Position numbers and translations under genes: made by a program | NCBI GenBank assembly: GCA_965240325.2 | Contig: OZ251227.1 | Location: forward strand, 2,914,001 to 2,978,000 | Length of the DNA: 64,000 nt | Direction of reading: 5' to 3' | Origin: Rebecca billardiae RCC1528 | Taxonomy: Eukaryota; Protista; Haptophyta | The notes under the pieces: generated by a model | Told to the model about the DNA's origin: nothing | The model's input: only the letters and a program-made list of their open reading frames with translations | Database searches by the model: none | In this document: in pieces, positions 1 through 45,299 of the stretch | Numbering within the stretch: the first letter of the stretch is position 1 | Layout: every line of letters starts with the position of its first letter

Positions 1-2
1 GG

Positions 3-819
3 CTACTGGGCGCGCTGCAGCCGTACTCGCTCGCGTGGACGGCCTTCTCGTGGGGCGTGGGCGCGGCCGCCGCGCAGCTCGCGTGCGGCCCGGCGCCCGC
101 GCTGCGCGACGCCCTCCTCGGGCCGAGCGCCGCGCCCCGCCGCGCCCTCGCCGACCTCTGCGTCGCCGGCGCGCTCGCGTGCGCGCTCGGCACGCTCGTG
201 CTCACGCGCGAGGTCGGGGAGAAGGGCGTGCGCGCGCACACGGCGCTGTACGCGTTCCACGTGGCGGTGTGGACGGCGGGCGTGTGCGTCGCCTCCCGCC
301 TCGACTGCGCGGGCGCGCCGCCGCCCGAGCAGCACGCCGAGCTGCCCACGTGCGCGCCGAGCCGCGAGCACGGCGCGCCCGACGCGCCGCGCGCGCCGCA
401 CCCGCTCGGGTCCCTGCCAGCGGCGGCGGCGCGCGCGCTGATCGGCAGGTCGGCGCTGATGCAGGTGGCGCAGGTGTGGCTGCGCCGGCTCTCGCGCTGC
501 ACGCGCGCGCCGCGCTCGCCGGCCGCCGCGCCCCGCCGCGCCGCCCACGGCCGGTGCTGCGGCGCGCCGGTACCGCTGAGCGCGCTGTGCGCGGCCGCTC
601 TGTGCTTGTACGGCTGCGCCGTGCGGCTTGTCGCGGGCGCGCCGGCGGTGCTGTGCTCGGCGGTGGCGTCGGAGGGCGACGCGGCCTGCGCGGCGGGGCG
701 CCCGCTCCACGCCATCCGCCTTGCCGACCCCAGCCTCCTCGGCGGCGCGCACCGCTGGCTGTACGGCGCGCCCGCCGTCGACGCGCCGCCGTGGTCCGCG
801 TGGCGGCCGCGCGCCGAGG

Positions 820-858
<39 letters not shown>

Positions 859-2772
859 GCGGGCGCGCGGGCGCGGGCGCGCCGTCGCGCGGCGTGGTGA
901 TCGCGGCGCGCGGCGACGCGTGGAAGTACGCGCAGCCCGTCATCGCGTGCGTCCACGTCCTCCGCGCCTCGCTCGGCTCCGCGCTGCCCGTCGAGGTGCT
1001 GCACGTGGGACAGCGTGAGGCGTTCACGCCGGGCGCGGCCGCGCTGCTCCGGGGCTACGGCGGGGTGAGCGTGGCGGACATGCTGCCGAGGCTGCGGCTG
1101 CCGGCGGGCGTGGACGAGCGCACGCTGCGCTCGTTCGCCGCGAAGCCCTTCGCGCTGCTCGCCGCCTCGTGCGAGCTCTGCGTCCTCGTCGATGCGAATG
1201 TGCTCTTCTTCGCTCCGCCCGAGCGGCTGCTTGCGAGGCTGGCGCCCGCGGCCGCGCCGGAGGAGCGCGCGGCCGCGGCCGGCGCGGAGGGTGGGGCGGC
1301 GGCCGACGACGGGGGGGAGGGCCCGGCGCCGCTGCAGCTCGTGCGCGACTACGTCGAGCCCTTCCGCACGACGGACCCCCTCTACGTCCACGGCTACCTC
1401 CGGCTGGACGCGGACGCGCACGCGCGCGCGCTCGGCGACGCGGAGTGTGACTCGAGTGTGGTGGTGGTGGACCGGAGGCGCGCCGCGCGCGCGCTGGCCG
1501 TGGTCGCGGCGCTCAACGCGCTCAAGCCCGCGACGTACCGGCACATGCACGGGGACAAGGACACGTGGTGGCTCGGCGCGGCGCTCGCGGGCGTGCGCGC
1601 CTCCGCCGCGGGCACGGAGGTCGGCTGGCTCGTGCGGGCGGACGAGGGCGGGCTGAGCGGCGGCGGCGACGGCGGCGGCGGAAGCGGCGGCGGCGCGCCG
1701 CACGGCCAGAGCGTGTGGGGGCACGTGCAGTTCGTCGGCGGCGAGGCGGCGACGTTCAACTGGCAGCCGCACTACCCGCGCGGCCACGTGCCCTTCGACG
1801 CGGCGGCGGGCGAGGCCGACGCCGCAGCCGGCGCGGAGCTGCGCTGCTGCGCCATGTGGGCAGAGCACCACAGCGGTGCGCGCCCGCTCGGCGCGCGCCC
1901 CGGCGGAGCGCCGTGCCGCGCCGCCCAGCGCCACCGGCCGCGCCGCGCGGGTGCGCGCGCGCGCTCACCGTGCCCCGCGGCGCGAACTCGCACCGCCGCG
2001 CGCCTCGGCCGCGCCAGGTCCGCACGACATGCCGCGCGTGCCGCTGCCGCCGCGCGCCGAGCCATCGGCCGGCGGCGCGGCCGGCGCGCTCCCAGCGCGG
2101 ATGCGCGAGACGTTCGCAGCGGCGCGCGCGGGGCTGGCGCTGGCGGCGCGCGCGGAGCGTGCCGAGGCGGGCGCGCCCGGCGGCGAGGCGGCGGGCTCGG
2201 CGCAGCCGCGCGCGCTCGCGCGCGCGAGCGCGTGGGCGGACGTGGCCGTGCGCACCGCCGTGATCTACGGCTGCCTGTGGGCGGGCGCCGCGCTCGCCGC
2301 GGCCGCGCGCGTGCGCCCGGCCGCGCGCGCCGCGCGCGCCGAGCTGCACGGCTGGCGCGCGCGCGCGGGCGGCGCGGGCGGCGGCGGCGGCGCGGCGCGC
2401 GGCGGCGCGCCGCCCGGCGCGCGCGCGCCCCCCGCGGCGCGCGCCGCGCTGCTCACGCTGCTGCTGCTGTGCGCCGCCGCGGCCGCGCTGCTCGCGGCCG
2501 GCGGCGCGTCGGGCGCGCGCGTTCCTCTTTTCCTCGACGCGCCGCTCGGCGCGCTCGCGCGCGCGGGGGCGCCGTTGCTCGGCGGCGCGGCGCGCGGGGG
2601 CGGGATGGTGCGCGCGATGGCGGAGCTCGAGGCGGGCGGCGGCGGCGGCGCGGCGCCGCCGCCGCTGCTGGTGAGCACCGTGCATGTCACGGCGCGCGAC
2701 GCGTCCGCGGCCGCGCAGCAGATGGCCCCTTGGTGCGCGCCACGCCGGCTGCCGCGCGCCAAGCCTCCTCCT

Positions 2773-2805
<33 letters not shown>

Positions 2806-3686
2806 CGGCCTCGCGCGCGCGCGCACGTGCATCGCACGGCCCGTCCGCGCGCTCGCTCAGCCGCGCCCGCCGCCCGCCACCCGCCGCGCCCGCGCTTGGC
2901 GCAATGCTGCGCAGGCGCTCGCTCGGGCTCGAGGTGCGCGTGGCGGACGACGCGCAGTGCCGGCGCGACGTGGAGCGCGCCGCGGCCGCGCTCGCCGAGC
3001 CGCGGCTGGTGCGCGCGTACGACAGCCTGCCCACGCCCGTCCTGCGCGCCGACCTGTGGCGGTACTGCATCGTGCTGCTCGAGGGCGGGCTGTACGCGGA
3101 CGCGGACGTGGTGCCCACGCCGAGGCTGCGCACCGCGCTGCAGGCGGCGGGCGCGGAGCGCGCCGCCGGCCGGTGCGAGCTGCTGCTGTTTGTGGAGAAC
3201 TGGTCCTTCATCCCCACGCGCGTGGGGCGCGCGGCGATCGGCCTCGGCCTCACCGACTTCTCGCGCTTCCCGCAGTTCCGCAACTGCATCTTCGGCGCCG
3301 CGGCGCCGGGGCACCCGCTGCTCGCGCGCGCGATCCGCGCCGCCCTCGAGCGCGTGCTCGCCGAGCGCCTCTCCGCGCCGCCGTCCAACGCGCGCGTGCT
3401 CGAGCTCACCGGCCCGGGGCTGCTCACCGACGTGGCGGAGGGCTTCCTCGCCGAGCGCGGCGCGGACGCGCGCGTCGCCTTTGTCGACCGCGGCACGGGC
3501 ACGTCGCTCTTCGCGCACGCGGGCGTGGGCAGCTGGAAGGCGGGCGCGGTCACGACCGGCCACTCGGAGCGCTGGCTGCTTCTCGGCCTCGGCGTCGCGC
3601 TCGGCGGCGCCGGGCTCGCGAGCGCGCTGTCGGCCGCGCGCGCGCGCGCGCGGCTGCGCAGCAAGGGCGCGCACAGCAAGGAGTAG
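3..3686 (+). CDS. 5'-truncated multi-TM glycosyltransferase: GT71 (Mannosyl_trans3/MNN-like) fused to a GT32 (DXD, Och1/Sur1-like) domain; exons <3-1875, 2018-2732, 2915-3686
   Basis: GT71 motifs FAAKPFALL, VLVDANVLF, ECDSSVVVVD, MHGDKDTWW. GT32 motifs ADLWRYCIVLLEGGLYADAD, GHPLL, TGPGLLT. Introns 1876-2017 and 2733-2914 (GTGCGC...CAG) restore one frame (HSG|PHD; APW|RSLGLEV). Confidence 0.75.
2780..2806. repeat. (CT)n microsatellite in intron
   Basis: tctctctc... run seen directly. Confidence 0.9.
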
Positions 3687-4403
3687 CGGCGGGGCGCCAA
3701 GCGCGTCCGCCGGCAGCGCCGCGCCGCCGTGCAGCATCGTGCCCAGCGCGAACACGGCCGCGGCGTCTCCCGCCGCGGCGGCGGCGCGCAGCACGCGCCC
3801 GCGCTGCGCGGCTCGGCCGACGCGCGGCGCGGCACGGGCTCGGCGCCAGCGGGTTTGGGGCGCGCCAGCGTCAGCCGAGCCGCGGCGTGACAGAGCGCTC
3901 GAAGCAGGGCTGCGCGGGCAGGCCCGCCGGCCAAGCGGCGGTCCCGGCGGCGCGCCTCGCTCAGATCGCGCTCGACCCCTCAATCTCGAGGCCCGGCCCA
4001 CACAGCCGCGCCAGCGGGCGGCACGCGTCGGAGACTGAGTGCCCTGCATGCGGTGTCCGCGGCCGCGCCGGAAATTGAGTTCAAAGTCAGAGTCAGTTAG
4101 TAAGATCGATATAGAGCGCTCTATCTGTACATAAGGCTGCTCAGGGATGCCGTGCCGCCACCGTAGCAGGAGTAACCGTGAGTCGCGACGCGCGCGAAAC
4201 TAGCGCCAATGAGGAGTGCTGAGCCGCCCACCGCCAGTCCCGCGGTGAGCGCCGACAGGCGACATCGTGTCAATCGTGACGTGCTTGAAGTCTCGGCGCG
4301 CCACGACATATCCTCCGACCTGCTCGAAGACTTGAACTGGTGATGCCACCTCCAAACGATATCTGATAGCACGGCATCATCGCGGCCGGAGGGTGCAGCC
4401 ATC

Positions 4404-9619: not shown

Positions 9620-11617
9620 TCACGTCGTGCGGATCACGTCTGACGGGAACTGTGTCGACCAGTGGTTTCTGCGCGGCGCGGCGTGGCGTTGGGCGAGTCG
9701 GTTGCACTGCGTGTCAGGCGGGGCACACCGGCAAGCGACCCGCGGGCGATTGCTCACGCACCGGTAGATCTCCATCTCTTTGTCGTCGAGCAAGCACGCG
9801 TCGAGCTCCTTCACCATCGCCGACTCGTCCAGGTTGATGCCAATGAAGACGATCTCCTGCCGCCGGTCGCCGTACTCGCCCTGCATCTCGGCGCTGATGT
9901 CGGCCGCGTCCTCGTCTGGCCAGTCGGTCGGGTCCGTGCTCGCCCACCACAGGCCCTGCTTCTTCACCTCGAAGGCGCGGCCGGCGTGCGCCCAGTAGAA
10001 GCACTCCAGGTGGTTGTTGGAGAGCCACAGGAAGCCCTTCGAGCGCACCAGCGCCGCGAACGGCGACTTCTGGTCCGCCTTGCCCTGCAGCTGGTCAGAG
10101 AGCGCGAGGTTGTCCTTGGCGGGCAGGTGCTGGATGCACCGGTCGACCAGCCGCTGTGGGTGGAACGGCCGGCGGCGCGTGTACACAAACGACGAGATGC
10201 CGAAGCGCTCGGCGTGGCGGACGCTCGCGGACTTGCCCTGCGCGCCGGGGGCGGCAGCGGCGGCGGCGCGCGGGGGCGGTGCGTCGAGCGATGATGAGCC
10301 GGGGGGCAGGCCGCGAGCTTGGGCGCTGCTTGGCACGTCGCGTCGCGACGCGTGCCGCGGGGCGCGCACGTGGCTGTGGCTGTGCTCGTGGTCATGACTC
10401 GGGTCCTTGCACTCCTGGTCGGTGCATGCCTTCTCGTCGTGGCCGTGCTCGTGGCCGTGGCCGTGGCCGTGGCCGTGGCCGTGCTCATGGCTCGCGTCCT
10501 TGCAGTCCTTCTCGGTGCACGGCTTCTCGTCGTGGCCGTGGCCGTGGCCGTGGCCGTGGCCGTGCTCGTGGCTCGCGTCCTTGCAGTCCTTCTCGGTGCA
10601 CGGCTTCTCGTCGTGGCCGTGGCCGTGGCCGTGGCCGTGGCCGTGGCCGTGGCCGTGCTCGTGTGTGCCATCCGTGCAGTTCTGATCGGTGCACTTGCTC
10701 GCTTCGCCCTCGCCGTGCCCGTGCTCCTGCCCGTCGTCACTGGCGTGCCCGTGCTCAGGCTCATGCCCGTGCCCGTGCCCGTGCTCGGTGTCGGCCTCGC
10801 CCTTGGCGCTCGCATTCCCGCGCAGCCGCTTCACCTGCTGCCGCAGGTCCGACTCGGCGTCGCGCTTGGCCGCGCGCGTGCCGTCATCCTGCTTGGCGCC
10901 GATCACGTCGGCGAGGTTAACGCGGCCCCACTCCGAGGTGTGCACGGCCGCGAGCGGGTTCATCGCCGCCACCATGGACTTGAGCGCCTTCAGCTCGTCC
11001 GCCATCTTGAGCTGGTCCGCCTTGTTGAGCACGACCACATCCGCCGTCTCCACCTGCTCGACGAGCAGCTCGACCACCTTGCGCTGCGTGTTCGAGATGC
11101 CGTCGTCCTCGCCGAGCTCGGGGCGCTCCATCACCTTGCCCTTCTCGTCGAAGAGGCTGACGAACGTGCTCGCGTCGACGACGGTGACGAGGGTGTGCAG
11201 CTCGACCTTGTTCATCAGCTCCTCGCCCGCGTCCACCGCCGCCTGGAAGGTGCCGCGGATCTCGCTCGGCTCCGCGACGCCGGTCGACTCGACGACGATG
11301 TGGTCGTACGGCACGCCGCGTCGTTCGGAGAGCTCGACGAGCTTGTCGATCGACTGCATGAACTCCTCCGCCATCGAGCAGCACGCGCAGCCGTTCTGCA
11401 GCTCGACCGTGTCGTCTGCAGCGGACGCTCCGCCGCCCACGCCCTTGATGAGCTTCGCGTCGATGTTGACCTCGGCCACGTCGTTCACGACGACACCCAC
11501 TTTGAGGCCCTCCTTGTTCTCGAGCAGGTGACGCAGCAGCGTCGTCTTCCCAGCCCCCAGGAAGCCCGAGAGCAGTGTGATCGGCACCGGCGCGCCTTGC
11601 GGGCGCGAGGCCTCCAT
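9620..11617 (-). CDS. COG0523/CobW-family G3E GTPase metallochaperone (Zn) with His/Cys-rich insert; probable in-frame introns 10238-10369 and 9669-9761
   Basis: [42 protein letters not shown]; CobW_C motifs [28 protein letters not shown]. Confidence 0.95.
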
Positions 11618-11796
11618 GGCAAGGGGATATTCCCGGCACCTTGGCTCTGCATCCGCGAGTGGACCCTTGCTGCGACTTGATTGGTGGAGAACAGGCTTGC
11701 GGGGTTCTGCGACGCACAATCTGAGATCCGAATGACATATCTCGCCTGCCTGCGGCTGTGTGCGTGCAAAGGAATAATAGGTGCGTGAGTAAACTC

Positions 11797-11961
11797 CAGG
11801 GGCGTTCCCCGCATCGGTCATACGCCAAATTGAACCGTCTTCCTATTGGAAGGGGCTTCGTCCATTTGAAGCGGGTACATTGAATACGGAAAAAGGCAAA
11901 GCCCCCCCAGGGGGGGCTTTGCTTTTCGGGAGCGTGTGGCAGGATCCCGGGAACGCCCTTG
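11797..11961. mobile_element. MITE-like element family A (copy 1)
   Basis: Imperfect TIRs CAGGGGCGTTCCC/GGGAACGCCCTTG; internal palindrome gcaaagccccccc-a-gggggggctttgc; homolog at 58320-58510. Confidence 0.65.
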
Positions 11962-12915: not shown

Positions 12916-13728
12916 TCAGAGGCAGAGCACGTTGGCCGGCTTGAGCCGCCACCGGCTGCCGTCCGGCTTGCTGAGCACCTCGTACCGCCCGACGGCCGCG
13001 TCAAAGCTGAGCACCTTGACGCGCACGCCGTTCCGGCTCGCATCGCTCAGGTGCGCCGTGGTTGCGCGCGTGCCGGGCGGCAGCAGCACGACTTCCGGCG
13101 GGAGCGTCCGCGAGCTCTTCGTGGGCTCCTCCACCACGGCGTACTCGTTCGCGCCTTCGTCGTACGACATGAGCGTGCCTGCGCCGCCCGGCGCCACGCC
13201 GTATGGCTGCGCGCCGTCCAGGAACTGCACCGGCACGAGCGTCTGCCTGGCGTTGGCAGGCTTGAGGGCGATGACGTCGCCCGATTCGAGGCGGCACTGG
13301 TAGCGAGCCCCATCGAACGACACGACGGACACCGTCTTGCCGTTGTGCTGGGTGGCGCTCTGCAGGCCGGCCACGAGCGCGCGCGTGCGTGGCGGGAGCA
13401 CGTCAAAGTGGCGGTACCGGTTCGCGGCGACGATGGCGCGTAGCCGAGCCTCGTCCGCGCCACTGAACTTGTCGACCAGCGCCTCAGACTGATAGAAGTG
13501 GAACGTCGGCATTGACGTGATCCCGCAGCGCTGCGCGACGTCCTGCGCCTCATCCACGTCCACCTTGACAAAGACGCAGTCGGGAAACTCGCTCGCGAGC
13601 GCCGCGAAGCGCGGCCCGATCATCTGGCAGGGACCACACCACGCGGCAGTGAAGTCGACGCACACGAGCGCGTCGCCCGCCTCGCGTAGCGCCGCCGAGA
13701 ACTCATGCAGGTCGGCGAGCTGCCGCAT
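12916..13728 (-). CDS. Thioredoxin (WCGPC) with C-terminal tandem SH3-like repeats
   Basis: VDFTAAWCGPCQMIGP, FVKVDVDE, ITSMPTF; tail repeats of the form GL...NG..V.V.SFD...RY......LKPAN. Confidence 0.9.
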   Translation of the reverse strand: MRQLADLHEFSAALREAGDALVCVDFTAAWCGPCQMIGPRFAALASEFPDCVFVKVDVDEAQDVAQRCGITSMPTFHFYQSEALVDKFSGADEARLRAIVAANRYRHFDVLPPRTRALVAGLQSATQHNGKTVSVVSFDGARYQCRLESGDVIALKPANARQTLVPVQFLDGAQPYGVAPGGAGTLMSYDEGANEYAVVEEPTKSSRTLPPEVVLLPPGTRATTAHLSDASRNGVRVKVLSFDAAVGRYEVLSKPDGSRWRLKPANVLCL

Positions 13729-13922
13729 GCGCGTCCGTCGCGTGTCTCGATGCCCTTGATCCGAGAGTAGACGGCGAACACTGTCGGCCAAGTCGCACCG
13801 GGGCGGGACTCACAAGTGCAGCAGCAGGGAGCCACGATGGCGAGCGACCGCGGGTCCACGCCTGCTGCCCTGCAGCAGGTGGACCCGCGGTCGCTTGCGA
13901 GACTATCTGACGAAAGACGGCC

Positions 13923-17250: not shown

Positions 17251-18279
17251 TCACAGCGCCTGGCCCCAGCGACTCATGCGCACGACGAGCGGCACCATCC
17301 ACACCGTCCACGTGTCCTCGTGCCACCGCACCGCGCTCGCAAACCTGCCGAGCATGCGGTATGCGCACAGGTGCAGCGCGAGGCCGTTGGCGAGCGCGGA
17401 GGTGACGAGGAAGAGCAGCGGGTACACGTTGACCACGTCCGTCATCACGCGCGGGTTGCAGTAGAAGTGCCACAGCCCGAGCGGCAGCGCGCCGCCGACG
17501 AGGCAGGAGGCGTACGCCAGCGGCTTGTGCCACTCGAGCAGCGAGCTGTACAGGTCGTACACGGCCACGCCGACAAAGTCGAGCTCGAGCCAGAGGTGGA
17601 GCACGTACAGCAGCGGGGGGAAGAAGAGGAGAGGCGCGTCGCCGAGCTGGCACAGCGAGATCAGCTCCCCGGCCGACTCGCCCCAGCGCTCCCACAGCGT
17701 GGTCGGGCTGAAGCCGCCGAAGAAGATCTGGAATGGCAGCGACCACGCCAGCCCGTGGCACGCGGGCAGCACCCAGAAGGTGACCCACGCCTCAGCCCCG
17801 CTGTTCGGCCACAGGCGGAAGCACAGCAGCACGGCAGCTGTGACGCCGTGTATCAACCTGGGGGCGAGCGCGCGCGGCGGGGAGGCCGTGGCCGATCAGC
17901 GGCTGGTCGCAGGCTCGCAGGCCCGATATGGAAAGGCGGTGCGCGCACGGCGCGTGTGCGCGCGGCCAGCGCACCAGCAGGTCGTTGTGAGCAGGCAGAG
18001 CCTCCCCGTGCCGTGCCATGCGAGCGTGCCGAGCACGAACAGCGTCCACAACGCGTACAACCCCGTCACAAGCTCGGGCCTCTGCCGCGTCTGCACGCAC
18101 AAGCTCGGTCCTGAGATGCCGAACGGGAAGGTCTCCATCCGGCCCTTCCGCCGGTCTACGACCGAAAACATCTCGCCGGGGGCATGCTCCTCCTCACTCC
18201 GGCCGTACTCGGCGCGACCACGGCTGCGCTGCCCCTTCCCCTCCGATCGGGGCTCGCCGCGACGTCGTGCCTTGCCCAT
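17251..18279 (-). CDS. Hypothetical polytopic membrane protein; intron 17858-17974
   Basis: Several hydrophobic helices; GTGCGC...CAG intron joins TTTCW|LIHGV in frame. Confidence 0.65.
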
Positions 18280-18844: not shown

Positions 18845-21576
18845 CTAGTTGGGCAAGTGCAGGAACTGCCACATGCCGAGCCCAAGCACGGCGACGGAGG
18901 TGATCGCAGCGAGTGGCGTGCTGACCAGGCCGGCGAAGTAGATGAGGGCGGAGACCTCGCCGATCGAGTCCACCTTGTACGCGCAGCGCCACAGCCCGCC
19001 GTGCACGGCCTGCGTGCGGAAGAGCTCGAGCGTGTTGTCGATCCCAAACTGCTTCCGGTTCTTCGGGTTCTTGGGCGACGCGCCATTGAGCACGTCGTGC
19101 CTGCGGGCGCGCGTGGCGCGGGGTGGGGCTCAGCCCGTGCGCGCCTCCGCCTCCGCGCGCTCTCTGCGGCGCGTGGCGCGCGCGCGCGCGTGCGCGCGCG
19201 CACATGAGGAGGGCGGCCATCACCGCGTTGGTCGTCTCCTGCTTGAAGATCTCGTAGCCGAAGTAGGGCATGCCGCCGTACGCCCACGCGAAGGTGCGGT
19301 TGTGGATGACAGAGATGGTGGCGGTGGACGGCGCGACCATCGTCGAGACGGCGTGCCCGCCCTCGAACGCGATGCACGCGCGCCAGTGCTGCATGCGCTT
19401 GGCGAGTGCGTAGTTTGGCCCCTGCGCCACCGACAGCCCGTCCACCAGGTTGATCGTCTGCGCAGTGGGGGCGCGCGGGGGCGGGCGAGATGGGCGCGGG
19501 GCCGGGGCGGAGAAGGCGCGGGCGCCCCCCCCCCCCCCACCGCGCCGCGCCACACCGCCACGCCGCGCGTGCCGCGGCACCTTGTCGGTCGCCTTGACGG
19601 GCGGCAGCGCGTTCTTCACGAGCTTGGTGCCGGCGGTGAGCACGTTGATCGCCTTCTCCAGCCCGAGCGAGCCGAAGCCCGAGCCGTACGCCGTGGCCGC
19701 GGCGGCGTGCGCGGCGTCGGTGCACACGTGGATGTCGGTGGGCGTGCAGAGGAACGCGACGGCCGTCGACGAGCGCGCCTCGCACAGCCGCTGGATGCAG
19801 TAGTCCGCGCACAGCGCCAGCTTGACGTGCAGGTCGCCGTCCAGGTACGTGTAGTTGCCAATCACCACCTGCGCGGAGGCGGGGATCGTCTTCTGCCACG
19901 CGACGAGCCAGTTGGCGATCTCGCCGGGCTGGTTCATCAGGTCGCAGCCGCTGGACTGCGCGCGCGCGGCGGGGGCGGAGGGGGTGCGGGGCGCGCACGG
20001 GCCGCCGCTGATCAGGCCGTCGCCGCGGTGCCGCGGCCGCCGCGCTGCGGTGCCGCGGCGCGCCGCCCCGCCCCGTGGCGCGGCGCGGCGCGGAGAAAGC
20101 CGCGCGGGGGGCACGCACCTCGTACATGTCGTCGTCGTCCGCGCACTTGTCCATCTTCTTCGAGAGCGGGAAGATGAGCTCGCCCGGCGAGTTGCGCGCC
20201 GTGTCGCACAGCCGCTTCCACAGCCCCTTGGTCGGGCGCGGGCCGCCCTTGCCCCAGCTGCCCGGGATGTCGATGGCGACGACGGTCGCGCCCAGCTCGA
20301 GCAGCTTGGGGAAGGGGCCCATGGCCGAGCCCGCGCCGATCATGACGAAGTAGACGCCCTGCAGGCTCTTGCCCGAGGCGAAGTAGTCGGACGTCCAGCA
20401 CAGCGCCTGCGCCGCGTCGGGCTCGACGATGCCGCGCTCCGCCCACTTGGTCGCCTGCTTCTTGAGCGCGTCGCCGCTCAGCGCCGCGTCCGCGGGCGGC
20501 GGCTTGGGCGAGCTGGGGTGCCAGCCGCCGTTGTACGGCACGCGGTACGCGAGCCCGCTCGCGGACTTGGTGCCCTTGACGCTGCCCGTCTCGAACGAGC
20601 CCTTCGCCGCCGCCACCATCTTGCCGAACGGCCCCTTGCTCCCGTCGGGCGCGATGAACTCCATGTTGGCGTACATCCACTCGAGCCCGGCGCGCGCGAT
20701 GCCGAGCGCGGCCGCGGGGGACTCGCAGCCGAGGCGGACCATCGCCATGTAGTGCTTGTTGTACGCGAAGCGCCAGTTCTTCTCCTTCGCCGCGCGCGCC
20801 GCCGCCTTCGCGCCCGCCTCGCCCCCCGCGCCCTCGAGCGCCTTGGCGATCACCGTGCGGCCGGCCGTCGACGTCGAGCGGCCGCCCTTGCCGTCCGGCG
20901 GGAACTGCGTGCCGCGCTCGGGCGGCTTGGGCTTCTCGGGCGGCGGGTAGCGCTTCTTGAAGGCGGACTTGCGGTTCTTGACCATGTTCATGTACATGAA
21001 CGGCGAGAGCGGCACGTACAGCGCCAGGTTGATCTTGAGCAGCAGCGGCGCGAGCCCGGCGGGCAGCGCGGCCGCGAGCCCGGCCGTGCCGAGCGCCGAC
21101 CACATCGTCACGCACTCGCCCGTGATGCCCGTGGGGTACAGGATGGCGAAGAGGGTGTACCGCAGCCAGAAGACGGGGTAGAGCGTGCCCTCGGTGCCCT
21201 TCGGCGTGAGCAGCGCGTTCAGGTAGAACGAGTAGCGCACGACCTCCACCAGACCCCACGAGAGCACCATCATGCCGCACGCCCACTGCCGCTGCGCCTC
21301 GGGCGACACGAGCGCGACGACGAGGACGACGATGCGCGACATCACCTGGATGAAGACGGTGAAGGCCGGGCTGCGCACCGCCCCCGTCACCGCGTGCACG
21401 ATCTCGAGGCACATCGCCCACTGCACGGGCACGAGCGGCCCGCTCGCCGCCGCCCACACGCGCGTGAGGTCGCCACCCGTCTCGGCGAGCGAGAGGCAGC
21501 CGAGCAGCAGCGCGTAGCCCCAGCCCGCGAGGCAGGCCGCATTGTAGAGGATCAGGTACGGCGTGAGCGCACCCAT
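18845..21576 (-). CDS. Very-long-chain 3-hydroxyacyl-CoA dehydratase (PTPLA/HACD/PHS1) fused to a large Rossmann/SDR-like domain; introns 19956-20118, 19458-19580, 19101-19203
   Basis: HACD motifs YLILYN, LEIVH..GAVRS, QVMSR, SWGLVEVVRYSFY, WLRYTLFAILYPTGITGE. C-terminal domain has MIGAGSAMG and NYALAK. Both domains begin in the same exon. Confidence 0.9.
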
Positions 21577-21908: not shown

Positions 21909-24900
21909 TCACGACGGCGTCGGCGGCATCGGCCGCGGCGACGGGACCGCCGAGCCCGGGCGCGAGAGCACTGCGGCGCGCTCCTCGTCGCGCACCGGCC
22001 GCGTGAGCTGCAGGTGAAGCAGATCCACGTGCCGACGGAGCGTCTCCTCGTCTGCGTCCGACGCCGGAGAGGCCGCGCGCACTGCCCTGGCTTGGCCGAG
22101 CACGCGCGGCGCGGCGCTGCTGTCGGGCACGCGCGCGGCAGTCGCTGCGCTGAGGGCGGGCGAGGTCGCGGAGAGCGCCGGCGCGGTCGGCGTGCCCTGC
22201 GAGCGCCGCGCGAGTCGGCTCTGCGCGCGGCCCTCGAAGTCGAGCCGCGCGGAGCGCGCGCTGGAGGAGGGCAGCGAGCCCGGCGACGTGGCCGCGCTCA
22301 GGCTGGGCGAGGCGCACGCGGACCCGCCCGTGGGCCCGCAGGAGCAGGGCGCGCCCAACCCGCCCTCCGCGGCCGGGTGCCGAGGTGGCCACCGCGCGCG
22401 CGCGCGGCCGCGCGAGCCGCCGGTGCCGGCGTCGCTAGCGCTGGCGCCGACGAGGCTCTGCCGCTCCTCCTCGCTCACCGGCCGCGTGAGCTGCAGGTTG
22501 AGCAGCTGCAGGTGGCGCTGCAGCGTGTCCGTGTCCGCGTCCGCGCCTGCGTCCTCGTCCGCACGCCGCTCGGCGCCGCCGCTCGGCGCCGAGCCGCCCA
22601 GAGCGAGGCGGCCGGGCGAGATGACGGCGGTGCCCGCCGCGGTGGGCGGCGCGGCGCAGAGCGCGACGCGCGGCGAGCGCCGGCCGCTCGCGCCGGTGCG
22701 CGCGCTGCTGCTCGCCACGCTCGCCGTGGACAAGCGCGCCGGCCGCGCGCCCTGCCGCTCCGGCGTGTGCGCGCCCGCGCCCACCGCCGTCGCGAGCGCG
22801 GCCGACGGCTGCGCGGGCGGCGCGCTGATCTCGAGCGCCGGCCGGCTGTGCCGCCGCAGCAGTGCCTGCACGGCGCCGCTCTGCGCGGGCCGGCCGGCCG
22901 GCGCGGCGCCCTCGGCGCCGGGCGGCGCGGGCGGATGCGACGCCGAGTGATCCGGCGCGCACGCGCCGCACGGCGCGCCGCAGCCGTGCGCGCGCGCCGA
23001 CAGCCTCGCCGGCCGTCCGGCCGCTCCGAGCGCGCGCAGCTGCTCGTCCGCGTCGGCGAGCGCGGCCGCGAGCGTGGAGCTGTGCACGCGCGCCGCGCCG
23101 CCCTCGGTGATCTCGCTCCGCGCGAGCTCGCGCGCGCGCCTGCGCACGTGCACCTCGCGCGCCCAGCAGCCCACCGCCCAGAGCAGTGTCGTGCGGCGCG
23201 CGCTGCGCACGCCGAGCGCGTCCGCGACGCTCGCCGCGCGCGCGAGTGCGGCCGCCTCCGCGGCCGCGCGCGCCTCGAGCTGAGCGGCCGCGCGGTGGGC
23301 CTGCTCCCAGCCCACTGCGGCCGCCTCGCGCTCGGCCTCCGAGTCCGCGAGACGCGCCTCGAGCTCGCCCAGCGCCGAGCGCAGCGACGCGGTCGCGACC
23401 GCCACGACCGCCGAGTCCGCCGCCGCCCGGCGCGTGTCGCGCTCGAGCGCGCGCACGGCCGCCGCCCACGCGCCGAGGGCGTGCGCGAGGCTGGCGCGCA
23501 CGTGCGCGCCCGCGTGCGCGCCGAGCAGCGCGCGCAGCGCATGCGCGTGCCACGCGCGACCCTCGCGCTCGCGCGCCTCGGCCTGCACAGCAGCGACGGC
23601 GCGCGCCCAGCGCGCGAGCGCCAGCGTCGCCGCGCCGCGGTCGATGTCGAGCGCGCGCGCCGCCGCGCTTGCGAGCGGCGTGGCCTGCGTGCCGGCGGCG
23701 CGGCGCTGCGTGCCGGCCGCGTCGGCGAGGGCGGCGTGCACCGCGCTGGCCGCGTCGCCTACCGCGGCCCCGAGCACCCCGAGCTCGGCTCGAGCCTCGT
23801 CGAGCTCGGCGGCCGCGTGCGAGGCCGCCGCCGCCTCACGCGCGCGCGCCTGCTCGATCGCGCGCGCGGCCGCGTCGAGCTCGTCCTCTGCAGCGGCGCG
23901 CGCGGCGCGCTCGGCGCCCAGCGCGTGCTCGAGCTGCTGCTCCGAGCGCTGGCGCTCCGCCTCGGCGCTGGCGCGCGCGGCGCGCTCCGCTTCGAGCTGG
24001 CGCTGCGCCTCGTCAGCGCGCCGCCGCTCCGCCTCCGCGCCGGCGGCCGCGGCCGCGAACCGCTGCGCCGCCTCGTCCGCGCGCCGCCGCTCCGCCTCCG
24101 CACCGGCGGCCGCGGCCGCGAGCCGCTGCGTCGCCTCGTCCGCGCGCCGCCGCTCCGCCTCCGCACCGGCGCGCAGCTGCTGCGTCGCCTCGTCCGCGCG
24201 CCGTCGCTCCTCGTCCGCAGCCGCGTGCGCGCCGGCGAGCCGCTGCGCGCCCTCGTCCGCGCGCCGGCGCTCCGCGTCGGTCGCGGCGTGCGCGGCCGCG
24301 ACGAGCTGGGTGGCCTCGTCCGCGCGCCGCCGCTCCGCGTCCGTGGCCGCGTGTGCGGCCGCCAGCTGTTGCGTCGCCTCGTCGGTGCGCCGCCGCTCCG
24401 CGTCTGTGGCCGCGTGTGCGGCCGCCACCCGTTGCGCGGCCTCGTCCGCGCGCCGGCGCTCCGCGTCGACTGCGGCACCCAGCTGCTGCGCGAGCTCGTC
24501 GACACGCTTGCGCTCCGCCTCTGCCGTTGCGCGCTCCGCCGCCAGCTGCTGCGCGCGCTCCTCCGCGCGCATCCGCTCCGCGTCCGCGCCCGCGCGCGCG
24601 GTGCGCTCGAGGGCGAGCTCGCGCGCGAGCTGTGCTGCGCGCTCGCGCTCGGCCTCCGCGGCGAGGCGCGCCTCGCGCTCCACGGCGAGCTGACGTGCGA
24701 GGTCGTCCGCTCGCTTGCGCTCCGTGCCGATGGCCGCCTCGGCCGAAGCCGCCAGCTCGGCCTTGGCGGTCGTGTGCGCCTTGCGCTCCGCGCCGAGCTC
24801 GCGCGCGAGCGCGTCGGCGCGCGCGCGCTCGGCAGGCAGGCTGTCGGCCTCGGCGGCTCGGCCAGCGAGCTGCGAGCTGACGTGCTGCGCCTCTGCGAGC

Positions 24901-25130
24901 TCTCGCCTGCGGACCACCAGCTCGCGCAGCGCGTCCGTGTGGCGTGTCGCGAGGTCCTGCCCGAGCGCGCGCGCCTCGGCGAGCGCGGCGCCGAGCGCCG
25001 CGCACTCGGCGGCGGCGCCAGCCTCACACTCGGCGAGTGCGCGCCAGAAGACGGCGTGCTCACATGCCGCGCGTGCCAGCCGCGCGCCGAGCGACGTGCC
25101 CGTCGCGGCAGGGAGCGTCACCGTCGTCAT
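21909..25130 (-). CDS. Coiled-coil protein with tandem AERRRADEA repeats
   Basis: Long ORF with heptad-rich composition, ~9 repeats of AERRRADEA(T/A)Q, and two copies of LxRHxxLLxLQLTRPV.xEER. Confidence 0.7.
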   Translation of the reverse strand: MTTVTLPAATGTSLGARLARAACEHAVFWRALAECEAGAAAECAALGAALAEARALGQDLATRHTDALRELVVRRRELAEAQHVSSQLAGRAAEADSLPAERARADALARELGAERKAHTTAKAELAASAEAAIGTERKRADDLARQLAVEREARLAAEAERERAAQLARELALERTARAGADAERMRAEERAQQLAAERATAEAERKRVDELAQQLGAAVDAERRRADEAAQRVAAAHAATDAERRRTDEATQQLAAAHAATDAERRRADEATQLVAAAHAATDAERRRADEGAQRLAGAHAAADEERRRADEATQQLRAGAEAERRRADEATQRLAAAAAGAEAERRRADEAAQRFAAAAAGAEAERRRADEAQRQLEAERAARASAEAERQRSEQQLEHALGAERAARAAAEDELDAAARAIEQARAREAAAASHAAAELDEARAELGVLGAAVGDAASAVHAALADAAGTQRRAAGTQATPLASAAARALDIDRGAATLALARWARAVAAVQAEAREREGRAWHAHALRALLGAHAGAHVRASLAHALGAWAAAVRALERDTRRAAADSAVVAVATASLRSALGELEARLADSEAEREAAAVGWEQAHRAAAQLEARAAAEAAALARAASVADALGVRSARRTTLLWAVGCWAREVHVRRRARELARSEITEGGAARVHSSTLAAALADADEQLRALGAAGRPARLSARAHGCGAPCGACAPDHSASHPPAPPGAEGAAPAGRPAQSGAVQALLRRHSRPALEISAPPAQPSAALATAVGAGAHTPERQGARPARLSTASVASSSARTGASGRRSPRVALCAAPPTAAGTAVISPGRLALGGSAPSGGAERRADEDAGADADTDTLQRHLQLLNLQLTRPVSEEERQSLVGASASDAGTGGSRGRARARWPPRHPAAEGGLGAPCSCGPTGGSACASPSLSAATSPGSLPSSSARSARLDFEGRAQSRLARRSQGTPTAPALSATSPALSAATAARVPDSSAAPRVLGQARAVRAASPASDADEETLRRHVDLLHLQLTRPVRDEERAAVLSRPGSAVPSPRPMPPTPS

Positions 25131-25251
25131 CCCCGGCACGCTCAGTCGTCGTCGCTCAGGAGGCCATCATCTCATGGGAGTTCAAAAAGCGCGCGCGCAA
25201 TGCGGCCGCGGCGGCCCGTTCGCCCGTGTCGCCGCGCGTACAGTTTACTAA

Positions 25252-39006: not shown

Positions 39007-40167
39007 TCATCCCGCCACGGCCGCGCGTCTGCGGCTGCTGGTGCCGGCTGCGAGCGGCTTGCTGCCCGCTAGCAGACCACCTGCTCCTGCAGCAGCCATG
39101 CGCTCTGTGGGGGCCGGGCAGCAGTGTGCGTAGCGCGCGCACAGCGCGTGCTCCGCGTCTGGGCCCCAGTGCTTGTGCCGCGGCCAGCGTATGGGCTGGT
39201 GCTGCTGCGCCTTGGCCGACCCGCTCTTGGCCGCCGCAGATCCGTTCCCCCCGGCTGCACCCGGGCCCCAGTCTGGCTGCAAGAAGAGCTCGGGCGGGAA
39301 GACCGTCTCCAGCACGTCCTGCTCCGTGCGCGTGAAGGGCAGGAAGTGGCCCCGCAGCGCGTTCGCCATCAGCAGCGCAAACGTCTCGTGGCTCGGCCGG
39401 AGCAGCATCACTGGGCGAGGGGGTCGTGCCGCGCGAGCACGGTGGGGGGCGGATGGGCGGGGCGGGGCGGCTAGGCTGGGCGGGGCGGGGCGGAGACCGC
39501 ACCCCTCGAGCGCGCTGCGCGAGTGCCGCGCGAGTGCACGCGCCCCGCGCGCACTGTGCGTGTTGAGCCCCCAGTAGCCCCTGTACGCGCGCTCTGGCGC
39601 AGCCTGGAAGAGGAGCCCCGCTGAGCGCGCGCGCTGGAGCGTGGGCTCTGGCGAGGCGGAAAGCACGACGTCAAGGTCCGTGTGGAGCACCATGTCGTAC
39701 TCCACGAGCGTCCACGCGAAGAGCTTGTACAGTGTCGCCCAGCCGTCGTTGCGCGGCTGGACAATCTTGGGCTTCCGAGGCGGCAGCTGCAGCAGCGGCG
39801 TCGGCTGGCCGGGCAGCGTGCGGAAGAGCGGGCGCAGGTCGCGCGTAAGATTGCGCAGGTCCCAGCCCTGTGCGTGGAGCATCGCCATCGAGTCCTCGTC
39901 GTACTCGCCGTGCATCAGCAGCACCTTGGGCCCCGTGTACGCGTGCGCGCGCAGCTGGCAGCCCATCTTGTACGCGAGCGCCGCGATCTTGCGCGGCGTG
40001 TGGTGCGCGCGGCAGATGCGCTCCTTCGCGGGGTCGCATGCGCGCGAAACGACCGTCGACACGACGGCGTATGGGGCGCGTGCGCCCCCGTCACAACCGG
40101 CCACAGCCGCGAGCACGGTGCATGCAACAAGGCCGAGGCGATTCGCGCCGGGCGCTGCCGCCATCAT
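39007..40167 (-). CDS. GT8 (glycogenin-like) glycosyltransferase; intron 39411-39554
   Basis: N-terminal signal/anchor; TLYKLFAWTLVEYDMVLHTDLD, NTHMMLLRPS, EQDVL; C-terminus uncertain. Confidence 0.8.
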   Translation of the reverse strand: MMAAAPGANRLGLVACTVLAAVAGCDGGARAPYAVVSTVVSRACDPAKERICRAHHTPRKIAALAYKMGCQLRAHAYTGPKVLLMHGEYDEDSMAMLHAQGWDLRNLTRDLRPLFRTLPGQPTPLLQLPPRKPKIVQPRNDGWATLYKLFAWTLVEYDMVLHTDLDVVLSASPEPTLQRARSAGLLFQAAPERAYRGYWGLNTHSARGARALARHSRSALEGCGLRPAPPSLAAPPRPSAPHRARAARPPRPVMLLRPSHETFALLMANALRGHFLPFTRTEQDVLETVFPPELFLQPDWGPGAAGGNGSAAAKSGSAKAQQHQPIRWPRHKHWGPDAEHALCARYAHCCPAPTERMAAAGAGGLLAGSKPLAAGTSSRRRAAVAG

Positions 40168-40329
40168 CAAATGACAATCCGGCGCCAGTGCCCAGTGACG
40201 CCACGACCCGGTGCCTCCTAGGGTGGGTGGGGTGGCACCGGCTTAGCCGCTTACTGTCTCATCAGATGTCCATCATAGTTATCGACTGTTAACAGTATAC
40301 ACTTGTTACTGACTGCTAGCTACGTAGAT

Positions 40330-41164
40330 TATTGGGATTACCGCAAGCTCCGAGCGTCTCGAGCCCTGCTAAAAGCTCACCGCGCACGACAGGACGGACG
40401 CCACCGCGAGGATCACATGCCTCGCGATCTCATCAGCTCTCAAGCCTCTGAACCTGGCCCTTATTTCCGGCGCTCTTGCGCCGGGCCAAAACAGCGATCG
40501 AGCTCCGATCGCTCCTGGGCTCGGGGCGGTAGTATCATCGCCGTGCCGACTTACCCAGATTTTGCCGCGATCAGCCAATCGGCGATCGCACCGTCCGTCC
40601 TGTTGCCGCTCAACTTTGTACCACTGCTTCTCGTCCATGTCCGGTGCTGCTCACCTGCTTTCCTTGGACAAATCCAGTGTACCAGCATGACGCCCGCGCT
40701 GCTCCGCGCTGCTCCGCGCTGCTCCGCGCTGCTCCGCGCTGCTCCGCGCTGCTCCGCGCTGCTCCGCGCTGCTCCGCGCTGCTCCGCGCGCTCCGCGCTG
40801 CTCCGCGCGCCCCGCGCTGCTCCGCGCTCCCGCGCCGCTGCGCCCGCGCTGCTCCGCGCCCGCGCCGCTGCGCCCGCGCTGCTCCGCGCTCGCGCGTCTG
40901 CTGCCGCGCGCGTCCTGGACGCGCGCGCTGCCAGCCACTGCTCCGCAGCAGCTGCTGCCGCCGGCCCGCCTGATGCGGCGCCAGCCCTGACACCCCAGCG
41001 GCAACGCCATCTGCTGAGATGCGTGCCCCAGACTGTGCCAGTTCATCCGCACTGCTGCTCTGCAGCAGCTGCGCCGCCGGTCTGCCTGCTGCAGCACCGG
41101 CCCTGACTCACCGCCGGCGACGCCATCTGCTGAGATGCGCGCCCCTGGCCTCGTCAGCTCAACA
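40330..41164 (-). repeat. 3' LTR (835 bp) with (GCTCCGCGCT)8
   Basis: Direct repeat of 44280-45104. Confidence 0.95.
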
Positions 41165-44100
41165 CCCCCCCTCGACAGCCATAGCCGCGAGCGAGTAGCG
41201 CCGCTCATCGCGCGCGCGTCGGGTGTCGCACACCATGATGGCGTCGACGTGCCACTCAAACGTAGCAGCGTCGTCCGTCGCCTTCGTCATGATGTCGGCG
41301 TGGTACATTGACCTCACGCCACGTACTCCGCCTCCGTCGAGCTCAGCTGGGCCATAACCTGCAGCCCGCTGCTGTGCCACGACACCGGCAATCCATTGTA
41401 GAAGACAATGATGCAGCCACCCGTCGACCTCCACCCGGATTCCCCTGGGTTGTTAGACCAAACAGAGTCACCCAAAGTGAGCAAGTCGTCGAGCTCGTCA
41501 ATCTCCGCGCGCTGGACCAACGCCTTGTCCGCGTCGGTCAGCCTCGCGCGCGCCGCTGCCTCTGGCAGCCGTATCCGCGTGCTCGCGTTCGTGCCGAATC
41601 GCTCGAGCCCGCCATCGATCGCCTCTGCGACCCGCGGCAACCCGCCCGCATCTGCGCGGCGGTCCCGCGCCAAAGTTGCGCCGGTGGTATCTCATACCAC
41701 CAGTGCGACTGCGCCCATGGCGCGCCCGCACCGCCCCGATCGCCGGCCTGCGGCATCGGCGGCTGTGCGCCCGTGCGCCCGCGCTGCTGCGCCCGCGCTG
41801 ACCCGCGCCCGCGCTGCTGCGCCCGCGCACCTGTGCTACGCGGCGACCCGCCAGCATCTGCTGCGGCCCCGCGCCGGGATTCCGTCGGCGGGATCCGACC
41901 CTGCCGACCCAGGCTGTGTCGCTGACGCGCCTGCTCCGCCACGCCCGCCCTGCGGCGTCGGCGTCGACGGCTGTGCGCACGCGCTGCTGCGCCCGCGCGC
42001 TGTTCCGCGCCTGCGCTGCCGCGCCCGTGCGCTGTTCCGCACCTGCGCTGCCGCGCCTGCGCGCTCCGCGCCCGCGCTGCTGCGCTCGCGCGCTGTTCCG
42101 CGCCCGCGCTGCTGCGCCCGCGCGCTGTTCCGCGCCCGCGCTGCCGCGCCCGCGCGCTGTTCCGCGTCCGCGCTGCCGCGCTCGCGCGCCGACGCCGACG
42201 CATCTGCGTCGCCGTCGTTCCTGACGTCGAACTCCGTCGCGTCGTCGTCACCGGCGTCGGCCGGCGGCTCGCCGCCGTCGCCGTCATCGTCCTGCGCCGC
42301 GCGGCGGCCCGCCAGCATCTGCTGCGGCCCCGCGCCGTGATTCCGCCGGCGGTATCTGACCCTGCCGACCCGGCTGCGTCATCGACGCGCCTGTCCCGCC
42401 ACGCCCGCCCTGCGGCGTCGGCGTCGACGGCTGTGCGCCCGCGCTGCTGCACCCGCGCTGTCCCGCGTCCACGCTGCTGCGCCCGCGCCCCGACGTTGAC
42501 GCATCTGCGTCGTCGTCGTACCCGACGTCGAACTCTGTCGCGTCGTCATTCCCGGCGTCGGCTGGCTGCTCGCCGCCGTCGCCGTCATCCGCGCCCGCGC
42601 TGCTGCACCCGCGCTGTCCCGCGTCCACGCTGCTGCGCCCGCGCCCCGACGTTGACGCATCTGCGTCGTCGTCGTACCCGACGTCGAACTCTGTCGCGTC
42701 GTCATTCCCGGCGTCGGCTGGCTGCTCGCCGCCGTCGCCGTCCTCGTCCTCACCGTCGGCGTCACCGCCGACCGGACGATGTCCGCCGCTTACCGCGGCG
42801 CCGTCACCATCACCCACGTACGCGCCACCGTCAGGTGCGCCCAGCGACGAGTGCCCCCCCTCGACCAGGTCGGTCTCGTCGATGCGTACGTCACGCAAGT
42901 GAAGAGACGTCCGTCGTCTACACGACATACGTACCAGAGTACGTTGAAGCCACGGAGCTGCTCCGCGCGCGGCGCGCGCTGATCGCCGCCGCCGCTGCCT
43001 CCTCCGCCCTCGCAGCCAGTCGGTATCTCTCCGCCGTCTTGGCCGCCGCCACGATCCCCGCCGTCGCCACCGCCGCCTGAGCCAGGCGATGAGCTTCGTG
43101 CGTGGACGTGTGGGTGCCGCCGCCACCACCGGGCGTACGACCACCTGGTTCGGTGCGCCCAGCGCCGCCGAGCCACTGCCGCGCGCTGCTGCGCGCACAC
43201 ACGCCGCACCGGCGTCCTGCGCCGTGCGTGTGCTTCCACCGACGCCTCAGCGTCGGGTCCCCACCTGCCGCCGAATGATCTCGGCCCGCAGCATGGAATC
43301 GAGCTGAACCTCCCGGCGTAGGCCGAGTGCCATGCACTGCCCCGCCGTCACCCCGCACTCGCGCCTTGCGCGCGCGCGGATACCGCGACTCAAAGATCGC
43401 GCCAGCGCCGCCGTCTCGGCGGCACTGCCAGCTGCGCCTCGCGTCAGCTGCAGACGTAGTCTCGGCGCCGCTGCGCCGCCCCGTCATGATCCCGCGCTCG
43501 CGCCTCGCGCGCGCGCGATTCCCGCGACTCAACAGTCGCGCCAGCGCCGCCATCTCGGTGCGGCACTGCCAGCTGCGCCTCGCGTCAGCTGCCGGCGTAG
43601 GACCAGTGCCAAGCACTGCCCGCCGCCGTAACAGCGCTCGTGTCGCCAGATTCCACCCGGACGATTCCGATAGATCCGGGTGTGCCAACCGCCGGACCTG
43701 TATCCAGTCCGGTCGTGCCAGCCGTGCCAGCCGGACCGCAAAACCCAGTCCAGCTGCCAGCCGCCATCCGGTGCCCTAGACCACCGGACAGGTTGATGAG
43801 CCAGCCCCTCCGAGTAGATCGCCGAGCCCGCCGTCGCCGCCGTCAGCTGCCGTGCAGCCACCCGGCGCTCGGGGTGCGTGCTCGCGCCGATCGTGCCAGT
43901 AGCGCTGCTCAGTCATCCGCCGCTGCACGCAGTAGTTCTCCTGCACCAGCTGCATCCGCTCAGATCCAATCGTGAGCTTCCGGGAGGCTGTCGTGTCGGG
44001 CTCATCACCGACAGGTACTGTTCCTCCCAATCGACGCGAAGTTCCGCGTCCGGGCCATGCGCGGAGATGATGCCGATGATCCCTGGCATCGTAGCGCCAT

Positions 44101-45257: not shown

Positions 45258-45299
<42 letters not shown>
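45258..45299. repeat. Compound (CA)n(TA)n microsatellite
   Basis: Seen directly. Confidence 0.9.

Follow-up and report, generated by a model that had tools for sequence, protein, structure and literature searches.

The stretch analysed here (hereafter the window) comprises 64,000 nucleotides of contig OZ251227.1 from the haptophyte Rebecca billardiae RCC1528 (assembly GCA_965240325.2, positions 2,914,001 to 2,978,000 of the forward strand), has a GC content of ~61–82% and carries eukaryotic genes with introns. One of these genes, on the minus strand at 18845..21576, has a complete coding region of four exons for a 780-residue protein, in which a 3-hydroxyacyl-CoA dehydratase (HACD, or PTPLA) domain is joined to a large second domain that we call X. 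Its start ATG lies at 21576 and its stop TAG at 18847–18845, and the span named in the original prediction, which had been made from the sequence without database searches, is exactly the distance from stop to start. Exon 1 (20119..21576) is a single uninterrupted frame of 486 codons running from the ATG to the GT donor at 20118; it encodes residues 1–486, which comprise the entire HACD, the linker, and ~260 residues at the N-terminal end of X, with its glycine motif. Residues 487–611 are encoded by exon 2 (19581..19955), residues 612–695 and two bases of codon 696 by exon 3 (19204..19457), and the last base of codon 696 through residue 780 and the stop codon by exon 4 (18845..19100), all on the minus strand. 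The three introns (19956–20118, 19458–19580, and 19101–19203; 163, 123, and 103 nt) are all of the GT–AG type. The HACD was predicted to run into the second domain, put at ~550 residues, within one exon, as it does in exon 1; the part of X beyond its first ~260 residues is encoded by exons 2–4.

Comparison of the spliced product with P0001, a 776-residue protein predicted independently in a JGI data set, gave 89.8% identity over 776 residues with zero gaps, from which we conclude that all three splice junctions are correct. The nearest named relatives of the fusion protein are from haptophytes, with 62–76% identity. Public records name such fusion proteins “very-long-chain (3R)-3-hydroxyacyl-CoA dehydratase”, “tyrosine phosphatase-like protein”, or “hypothetical protein”, and domain X itself is unannotated in them. 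No description of an HACD–X fusion was found in the full-text literature searched, which covers only a minority of subscription journals, and an earlier one may exist.

The N-terminal part resembles an intact member of the HACD family. Pfam PTPLA (PF04387) matches residues 52–207 (20956..21423, minus strand) with E = 2.2e-40 and 138 bits (cut-off 27), covering profile positions 1–161 of 162, and HPO-8 from Caenorhabditis elegans (PDB: 22of_B) matches residues 4–204 with E = 1.1e-21. The membrane part extends over residues ~4–209, and the full-length AlphaFold2 (AF2) model places six long helices at residues 4–209, of which plain hydropathy detects only some. The LYPTGITGE motif is located at residues 146–154, and its catalytic segment from Y147 to E154 (21115..21138, minus strand) aligns with YPMGVSGE of HPO-8, in agreement with the complete domain and catalytic Tyr and Glu that had been predicted. 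Among the fusion proteins, the catalytic Tyr is kept in 154/160 and the catalytic Glu in 159/160. We take these two residues to be the equivalents of Tyr149 and Glu156 in yeast Phs1. With a complete domain and conserved catalytic residues, the HACD part looks like a working dehydratase. Separately, HPO-8 is chain B of its PDB entry and was thus probably solved with a partner protein; whether that partner is a 3-ketoacyl-CoA reductase (KCR) or TECR would bear on the natural docking enzyme of HACD.

Fold and conserved residues of domain X

Domain X (residues 225–743; 18959..20904 on the minus strand, interrupted by the three introns) consists of an N-terminal helical/β subdomain, a divergent core of the short-chain dehydrogenase/reductase (SDR) type with large insertions, and C-terminal helices. 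Modeling of X in AF2 from a 45-sequence alignment gave a mean predicted local distance difference test score (pLDDT) of 92.0 and a predicted TM-score (pTM) of 0.91. The full-length model has a pLDDT of 91.4 and a pTM of 0.80, the latter hinting at a defined two-domain arrangement, with channelling beyond its reach. A Foldseek search of the PDB with the model of X returned the α chain of fungal type I fatty acid synthase (FAS) for all of the top 33 matches (E 1.7e-6 to 2.5e-4), in compact alignments of ~420 columns with a root-mean-square deviation of 7.7–8.6 Å; several of the top FAS entries are explicitly titled “ketoacyl reductase domain and 4-helical bundle”. The next matches are DhuD, peroxisomal trans-2-enoyl-CoA reductase, KduD, an A-type ketoreductase of a polyketide synthase, FabG, and glucose dehydrogenase, and these single-domain SDRs are matched with a Foldseek probability of 1.00, as is the FAS ketoreductase region, and with TM-scores of 0.45–0.59 normalised on the SDR target. 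The ranking was unchanged when the full-length model served as query. On the evidence of these models X has the SDR/Rossmann fold, as had been proposed, and the contrary outcome of a model with no SDR fold did not occur.

The predicted secondary structure in the AF2 models keeps the order of SDR elements. Strand β1 (residues 408–414) carries YFVMIG and is followed by GAGSAMG; β2 (residues 431–435) is followed by Asp436; β4 spans residues 515–520, αE residues 527–546, and β5 residues 551–556, the last of these followed by TPTD. An insertion of ~60 residues separates β5 from αF (residues 625–643), which begins with NYALAK, and β6 is followed by VAPSTAT. Ahead of this Rossmann core lies a subdomain of ~180 residues with four helices and a small sheet, and after it come helices and a hydrophobic tail helix. 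The tail (residues 744–776; 18860..18958, minus strand), which AF2 models as a helix at residues 743–775, has a hydropathy peak of 1.8 and is a predicted membrane anchor; it is kept in stand-alone eukaryotic homologues of X and absent from bacterial ones.

Conservation was counted over 322 full-length members of the X family. The glycine motif IGAGSAMGP (residues 413–421; 20314..20340, minus strand) follows β1 as the predicted cofactor site and aligns with TGAGSGLG of SDR-type 3-hydroxyacyl-CoA dehydrogenases, with G414 in 322/322, G420 in 308/322, and P421 in 320/322. VVAID occupies residues 432–436, and Asp436 at the end of β2 (20269..20271, minus strand) is Asp in 304 of the 322 proteins; by the rules known for SDRs this predicts a preference for NAD(H). 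The glycine motif contains no basic residue and does not match the NADPH signature of canonical KCRs of the endoplasmic reticulum (ER). At the end of β5, the segment CTPTD (residues 556–560; 19734..19748, minus strand) carries a Ser or Thr at position 557 in all but one of the proteins (321/322), together with P558 (315), T559 (301), and D560 (304). The SDR-type YxxxK motif at the start of αF, Y627-A-L-A-K631 (19398..19412, minus strand), lies within NYALAK at residues 626–631. Its Tyr is invariant (322/322) and its Lys is found in 320/322, so the outcome in which the motif fails to be conserved among homologues did not occur; the surrounding QGPNYALAK resembles GQANYAAAK of FabG from Escherichia coli (MG1655 record). 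After β6, APSTAT (residues 653–658; 19317..19334, minus strand) corresponds to the SDR “PG...T” motif and compares with VVAPGFIET of E. coli FabG, with P654 in 319/322 and T658 in 320/322. Further conserved residues are Q623 (322), N626 (319), W636 (320), R637 (320), and S660 (322). Every motif quoted in the original prediction (the glycine motif, VVAID, NYALAK, APSTAT, and the hydrophobic tail) is thus present, and the glycine motif, the Asp of VVAID, YxxxK, and P..T are conserved across the family.

Ser620, seven residues before the Tyr, varies among homologues, and position 557 is for this reason the more likely source of the hydroxyl residue in a candidate catalytic set. The spacing of Tyr and Lys is Y-x3-K in 320/322, unlike the Y-x6-K or Y-x8-K of SDR-fold enoyl reductases.

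Profile searches identified no family for X. Neither Pfam nor NCBIfam matched residues ~225–780 of the four-exon product, PTPLA being the only domain found, and 45 homologous X domains yielded nothing relevant in Pfam, including adh_short, adh_short_C2, and KR, even at E ≤ 10. The only PDB profile matches near significance were to SDR-type 3-hydroxyacyl-CoA dehydrogenases over ~45 residues of the β1-Gly-β2 region, with a non-significant E of 0.017. FAS chains were not retrieved by the PDB profile searches, and matches to a glucosyltransferase and a carbonic anhydrase were set aside as chance. Known reductases were also considered as identities for X and rejected. A canonical ER KCR (Ifa38/HSD17B12/KCR1) would be expected to match classical SDR profiles and has ~320 residues rather than ~520; TECR/Tsc13 has a polytopic membrane fold and belongs to the steroid 5α-reductase family (PF02544), which X, a soluble α/β domain, does not match in Pfam; and FabI or FabV/TER differ in Tyr–Lys spacing (E. 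coli FabI compared). We regard X as a new, enlarged SDR family and HACD–X as a new bifunctional architecture inside a known pathway.

Distribution, domain order, and genomic surroundings

An exhaustive profile search with X recovered 2,601 cluster representatives when the cut-off was E ≤ 1e-3, and 797 when it was E ≤ 1e-30. X occurs in no fewer than nine lineages of protists and also in a few bacteria. The full-length members divide into 161 with the order HACD–X, 13 with the order X–HACD, and 148 stand-alone proteins, some of which are truncated models. HACD–X proteins occur in haptophytes (Emiliania, Prymnesium, Chrysochromulina), pelagophytes (Pelagomonas, CCMP2097), many diatoms (Seminavis, Chaetoceros, Cyclotella, Eucampia, Odontella, Nitzschia, Trieres, Attheya), and the kinetoplastid Neobodo, and complete examples derived from transcriptomes are P0003 (MMETSP1464), P0100 (Neobodo), and P0326 (Eucampia). 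Stand-alone X proteins of ~500–575 residues are found in the cryptophyte Rhodomonas, the metamonad Carpediemonas (two copies), the jakobid Stygiella, the amoebozoans Vannella and Pessonella, the animal relative Creolimax, a bicosoecid, the prasinophyte Pterosperma, and Durinskia. Rhodomonas encodes X (P0067) and HACD (P0446) on separate proteins. A search for short stand-alone HACDs in haptophytes returned mostly truncated fusions, the only named sources being a cryptophyte and a fungus. The relevance to algal very-long-chain polyunsaturated fatty acids that was originally suggested proved too narrow, as the X family is also present in non-photosynthetic protists and in bacteria.

The reverse order is represented by P0131, P0137, P0139, P0145, P0164–P0166, P0290, and P0350, among others, with sources that include one dinoflagellate transcriptome and metagenome contigs of up to 58 kb. 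In these proteins the match to X ends where the tail helix would start and the HACD match begins immediately, an arrangement in which the first transmembrane helix of HACD stands in for the tail anchor of X. In a rough FastTree tree, 10 of the 13 rows of one well-supported clade are reverse fusions, and forward fusions are spread over several clades. As judged from these sequences, the pairing of HACD and X arose with at least two different junctions, and it is retained in eukaryotes that are only remotely related. The reverse-fusion clade also contains the forward-order proteins P0146 and P0185, which means either that both orders arose in this lineage or that some models are chimeric. Among the full-length members examined, no fusion partner of X other than HACD was found. 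P0157 (1381 residues), which combines an N-terminus of the polycystin cation-channel type with PTPLA and X, probably represents two merged gene models.

Six unrelated bacterial metagenome-assembled genomes encode full-length X with 32–35% identity, all motifs, and no membrane tail (L003, 7860–9374; L004, 7953–9545; L008, 7803–9458; also L005–L007). This patchy spread suggests horizontal transfer, in either direction. The stand-alone X genes of Carpediemonas and of a metagenome contig have unrelated flanking genes.

The neighbours of the R. billardiae fusion gene with a strong coding signature, all on the minus strand, are a CobW/HypB/UreG GTPase with a CobW_C domain (9623–11842), a thioredoxin-domain protein (12919–13809), and a Ras-family small GTPase (48137–48802), none of which is tied to lipid metabolism. 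The sequence immediately upstream of the fusion gene has ~82% GC and contains an open frame of 1076 residues (21909–25139, minus strand) with no Pfam match and many coiled-coil-like units rich in Ala, Glu, and Arg (…AERRRADEA.QQL…); the opposite strand also holds an open frame, of 1183 residues, which leaves the coding strand, if any, ambiguous. Two further minus-strand frames with no Pfam match are probably real exons: a hydrophobic-looking one just downstream of the fusion gene (17254–17895; third-position GC 0.95) and another at 45487–47106 (third-position GC 0.91). Rfam and tRNA scans detected no RNA genes in the window. In base composition, positions 1–4000 and 22001–24000 exceed 80% GC, well over the window average, and positions 40001–46000 show a sustained negative GC skew (−0.10 to −0.16) along with a negative AT skew, unlike the rest.

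Candidate reactions of domain X

In the ER elongation cycle, reduction of 3-ketoacyl-CoA precedes the HACD step and reduction of enoyl-CoA follows it, and the textbook elongase consists of four separate proteins. A functional link of X to HACD is strongly supported by their fusion in both orders, with HACD as the sole partner found; being fused in both orders is also classic “Rosetta-stone” evidence that the two share a pathway. The reading we favour, and to which we give an even chance, is that X acts as a 3-ketoacyl-CoA reductase feeding HACD, making the fusion a bifunctional ER elongation enzyme. X would reduce the 3-ketoacyl-CoA made by ELO to 3-hydroxyacyl-CoA, the step immediately before HACD, and the N-terminal HACD would dehydrate the (3R)-3-hydroxyacyl-CoA to trans-2-enoyl-CoA, placing two consecutive elongation steps on one polypeptide. 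The catalytic set would be Ser/Thr557–Tyr627–Lys631, the dinucleotide site would comprise GAGSAMG and Asp436, and because of the Asp after β2 the cofactor would probably be NADH rather than NADPH. We suppose that X sits on the cytosolic face right after the last HACD helix and is tied back to the membrane by the C-terminal helix. Both termini of HACD are reportedly cytosolic, according to topology work by Kihara and co-workers, which would make X cytosolic in both domain orders; and since the first transmembrane helix of HACD replaces the tail helix in X–HACD, X would be kept on the same side of the membrane. Substrate, reaction and its direction, cofactor, membrane topology, and any channelling are what we infer from fold, motifs, and domain pairing.

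Several points weigh against X being a ketoreductase. Sequence methods tie it to no SDR family: comparison by hhalign of the X alignment with single FabG and FabI sequences of E. coli gave no signal, so that X is mapped to SDRs at the level of residues by the order of its motifs and by predicted secondary structure, and PDB profile searches with 45- and 139-sequence alignments reached only noise-level matches to the first ~45 residues of SDRs. Owing to the insertion, the candidate Ser/Thr557 and Tyr627 are ~68–70 residues apart, as compared with ~13 in classical SDRs. Peroxisomal trans-2-enoyl-CoA reductase is among the best single-domain structural matches. The NAD(H) preference predicted from Asp436 differs from that of the known ER KCRs, which use NADPH. 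The six bacterial loci (L003–L008) share no theme and contain nothing lipid-related; their neighbourhoods are truly bacterial, with LysR or AraC regulators, transporters, a sulfatase, and histidine kinases. Finally, canonical KCR and TER appear beside HACD, by automatic annotation, in a transcriptome study of the diatom Nitzschia laevis (PMC8401676), so no vacant elongation step requires X; as diatoms also carry the fusion, X is probably an addition to the canonical enzymes and not their replacement.

The step on the other side of HACD has to be weighed as well. X might be a trans-2-enoyl-CoA reductase, an SDR-type analogue of TECR/Tsc13 taking enoyl-CoA from the fused HACD. This step likewise adjoins HACD and fits fusion in both orders equally well, an interaction of HACD with TECR has been reported in yeast, plants, and mammals, and peroxisomal trans-2-enoyl-CoA reductase (PDB: 1yxm) is the second-best single-domain structural match. 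The known SDR-fold enoyl reductases differ in their active sites, however: FabI uses Y-x6-K, FabV/TER use Y-x8-K, and PECR/DECR are not known to have the Tyr of the motif. In X the Y-x3-K is invariant and accompanied by a Ser/Thr, its nearest fold is that of a ketoreductase, and a TER is already annotated in a diatom (PMC8401676); on balance an enoyl reductase seems unlikely. The plain Y-x3-K, the Ser/Thr, the FabG-like context of the Tyr, and the nearest fold all lead us to favour keto-reduction. The earlier proposal of a 3-ketoacyl- or enoyl-CoA reductase coupled to the dehydratase stands as to the SDR fold and the link to HACD, with keto-reduction the likelier of its two reactions.

It is equally unlikely, in our estimate, that X acts on another lipid carbonyl whose turnover calls for very-long-chain acyl-CoA metabolism close by, such as that of 3-ketosphinganine, or serves mainly as a structural or regulatory subunit of the elongase. 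Such a role would agree with the failure of sequence searches to assign X to any family, with the bacterial genes, which stand singly beside regulators with fatty-acid genes not nearby, and with the apparent coexistence of canonical KCR and TER with the fusion in a diatom. HACD as the sole partner, fused in two orders, points instead to a reaction adjoining HACD, and a non-catalytic role is hard to square with cofactor and catalytic residues that do not vary among the 322 proteins.

The same active-site residues would also serve the reverse of the KCR reaction, and X could be an NAD+-dependent (3R)-3-hydroxyacyl-CoA dehydrogenase for which HACD works as the hydratase, the pair forming a membrane-bound counterpart of peroxisomal multifunctional enzyme 2 (MFE-2) that shortens or retroconverts very long acyl chains. 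The NAD(H) preference predicted from the Asp after β2, which is nearly invariant, is in line with this, as is the fact that the sole near-significant sequence matches in the PDB are SDR-type 3-hydroxyacyl-CoA dehydrogenases (E = 0.017), although these span ~45 residues and are not significant. We find this quite unlikely: to our knowledge, HACD family members function only in elongation, the X family is present in the anaerobic protists Carpediemonas and Stygiella, where β-oxidation is not expected, and no oxidase or thiolase partner was seen. That the fusion is an artefact of annotation or assembly merging two neighbouring genes is ruled out to near certainty by the HACD and the first 260 residues of X lying in one frame of exon 1, by the gapless alignment of the product to P0001, and by 161 forward fusions in genomes, metagenomes, and transcriptomes of independent origin; the predicted single-gene fusion is genuine, with a shared exon here and transcriptome-derived proteins of like architecture in relatives.

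Returning to keto-reduction, a wider proposal is possible, which we put forward tentatively and with more doubt than belief when its parts are taken jointly. X would be the founder of an ancient enlarged family of SDR ketoreductases, present in most eukaryotic supergroups and a few bacteria and apparently missing from animals, fungi, and land plants; it would act as a second, NADH-linked elongase KCR that is physically coupled to HACD, in many lineages through fusion and, in those with separate genes, presumably within a complex. Its structural likeness to the ketoreductase region of fungal FAS would then mean that the fungal enzyme took this region over from the X family.

Most of the eicosapentaenoic and docosahexaenoic acid of the ocean comes from diatoms, haptophytes, pelagophytes, and dinoflagellates, which elongate fatty acids in the ER. 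In these same groups HACD is joined to a large, conserved, catalytically intact-looking, and unnamed oxidoreductase, and the recurrence of the HACD/X pairing in many protist groups suggests that part of the elongation machinery has gone undescribed. Should X carry out either the keto- or the enoyl-reduction of the cycle, the protist elongase would differ in composition from the textbook one, lipid engineering would gain a natural two-step fusion, and the use of NADH versus NADPH in these cells would become a question; should X do something else beside HACD, that would be newer still.

Comparison with known dehydratases and reductases

The N-terminal 210 residues of the fusion correspond to a full-length member of the HACD/PTPLA family (yeast Phs1, plant PAS2, human HACD1–4, HPO-8), sharing with it a catalytic Tyr and Glu seven residues apart and, in the AF2 model, six helices. 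Known HACDs are stand-alone proteins of ~220–250 residues, whereas the fusion bears an additional 570 residues. Peroxisomal MFE-2 offers a parallel for the combination of activities: in both, one chain holds an SDR acting at C3 of the acyl-CoA (as proposed for X) and an enzyme interconverting (3R)-3-hydroxyacyl-CoA and trans-2-enoyl-CoA, and both have an NAD-type cofactor signature. MFE-2 differs in having a soluble hot-dog hydratase and in serving peroxisomal β-oxidation, and has no sequence relationship to HACD–X.

With classical SDR ketoreductases (FabG; Ifa38/HSD17B12/KCR1), X shares the Rossmann fold, a glycine motif like TGxxx[AG]xG, a hydroxyl-bearing residue where β5 ends, NYAxAK, and VAP..T following β6. 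The ER KCRs belong to the elongation cycle that we propose for X and act at the cytosolic side of the ER. Unlike them, X is twice as long, with a ~180-residue N-terminal subdomain and a ~60-residue insertion between β5 and αF, has no NNAG motif, carries Asp instead of a basic residue after β2, and goes unrecognised by the adh_short and KR profiles.

The best structural match to X (Foldseek E 1.7e-6) is the ketoreductase region of the α chain of fungal type I FAS (PDB: 6u5v, 8prv, 9d48). Each consists of an SDR core that helical additions have enlarged, with a Y-x3-K chemistry that in FAS acts, and in X would act, on 3-ketoacyl thioesters. At the level of sequence they share ~10–14% identity with no detectable signal, and TM-scores are low (~0.3–0.38 on the query). 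X lies outside a megasynthase, is predicted to be tethered to the membrane, would use CoA rather than acyl carrier protein thioesters, and has an Asp that predicts NAD(H), not NADPH. If X is indeed the ketoreductase or enoyl reductase of the elongation cycle, this shared and enlarged architecture may link it to the origin of the fungal FAS ketoreductase.

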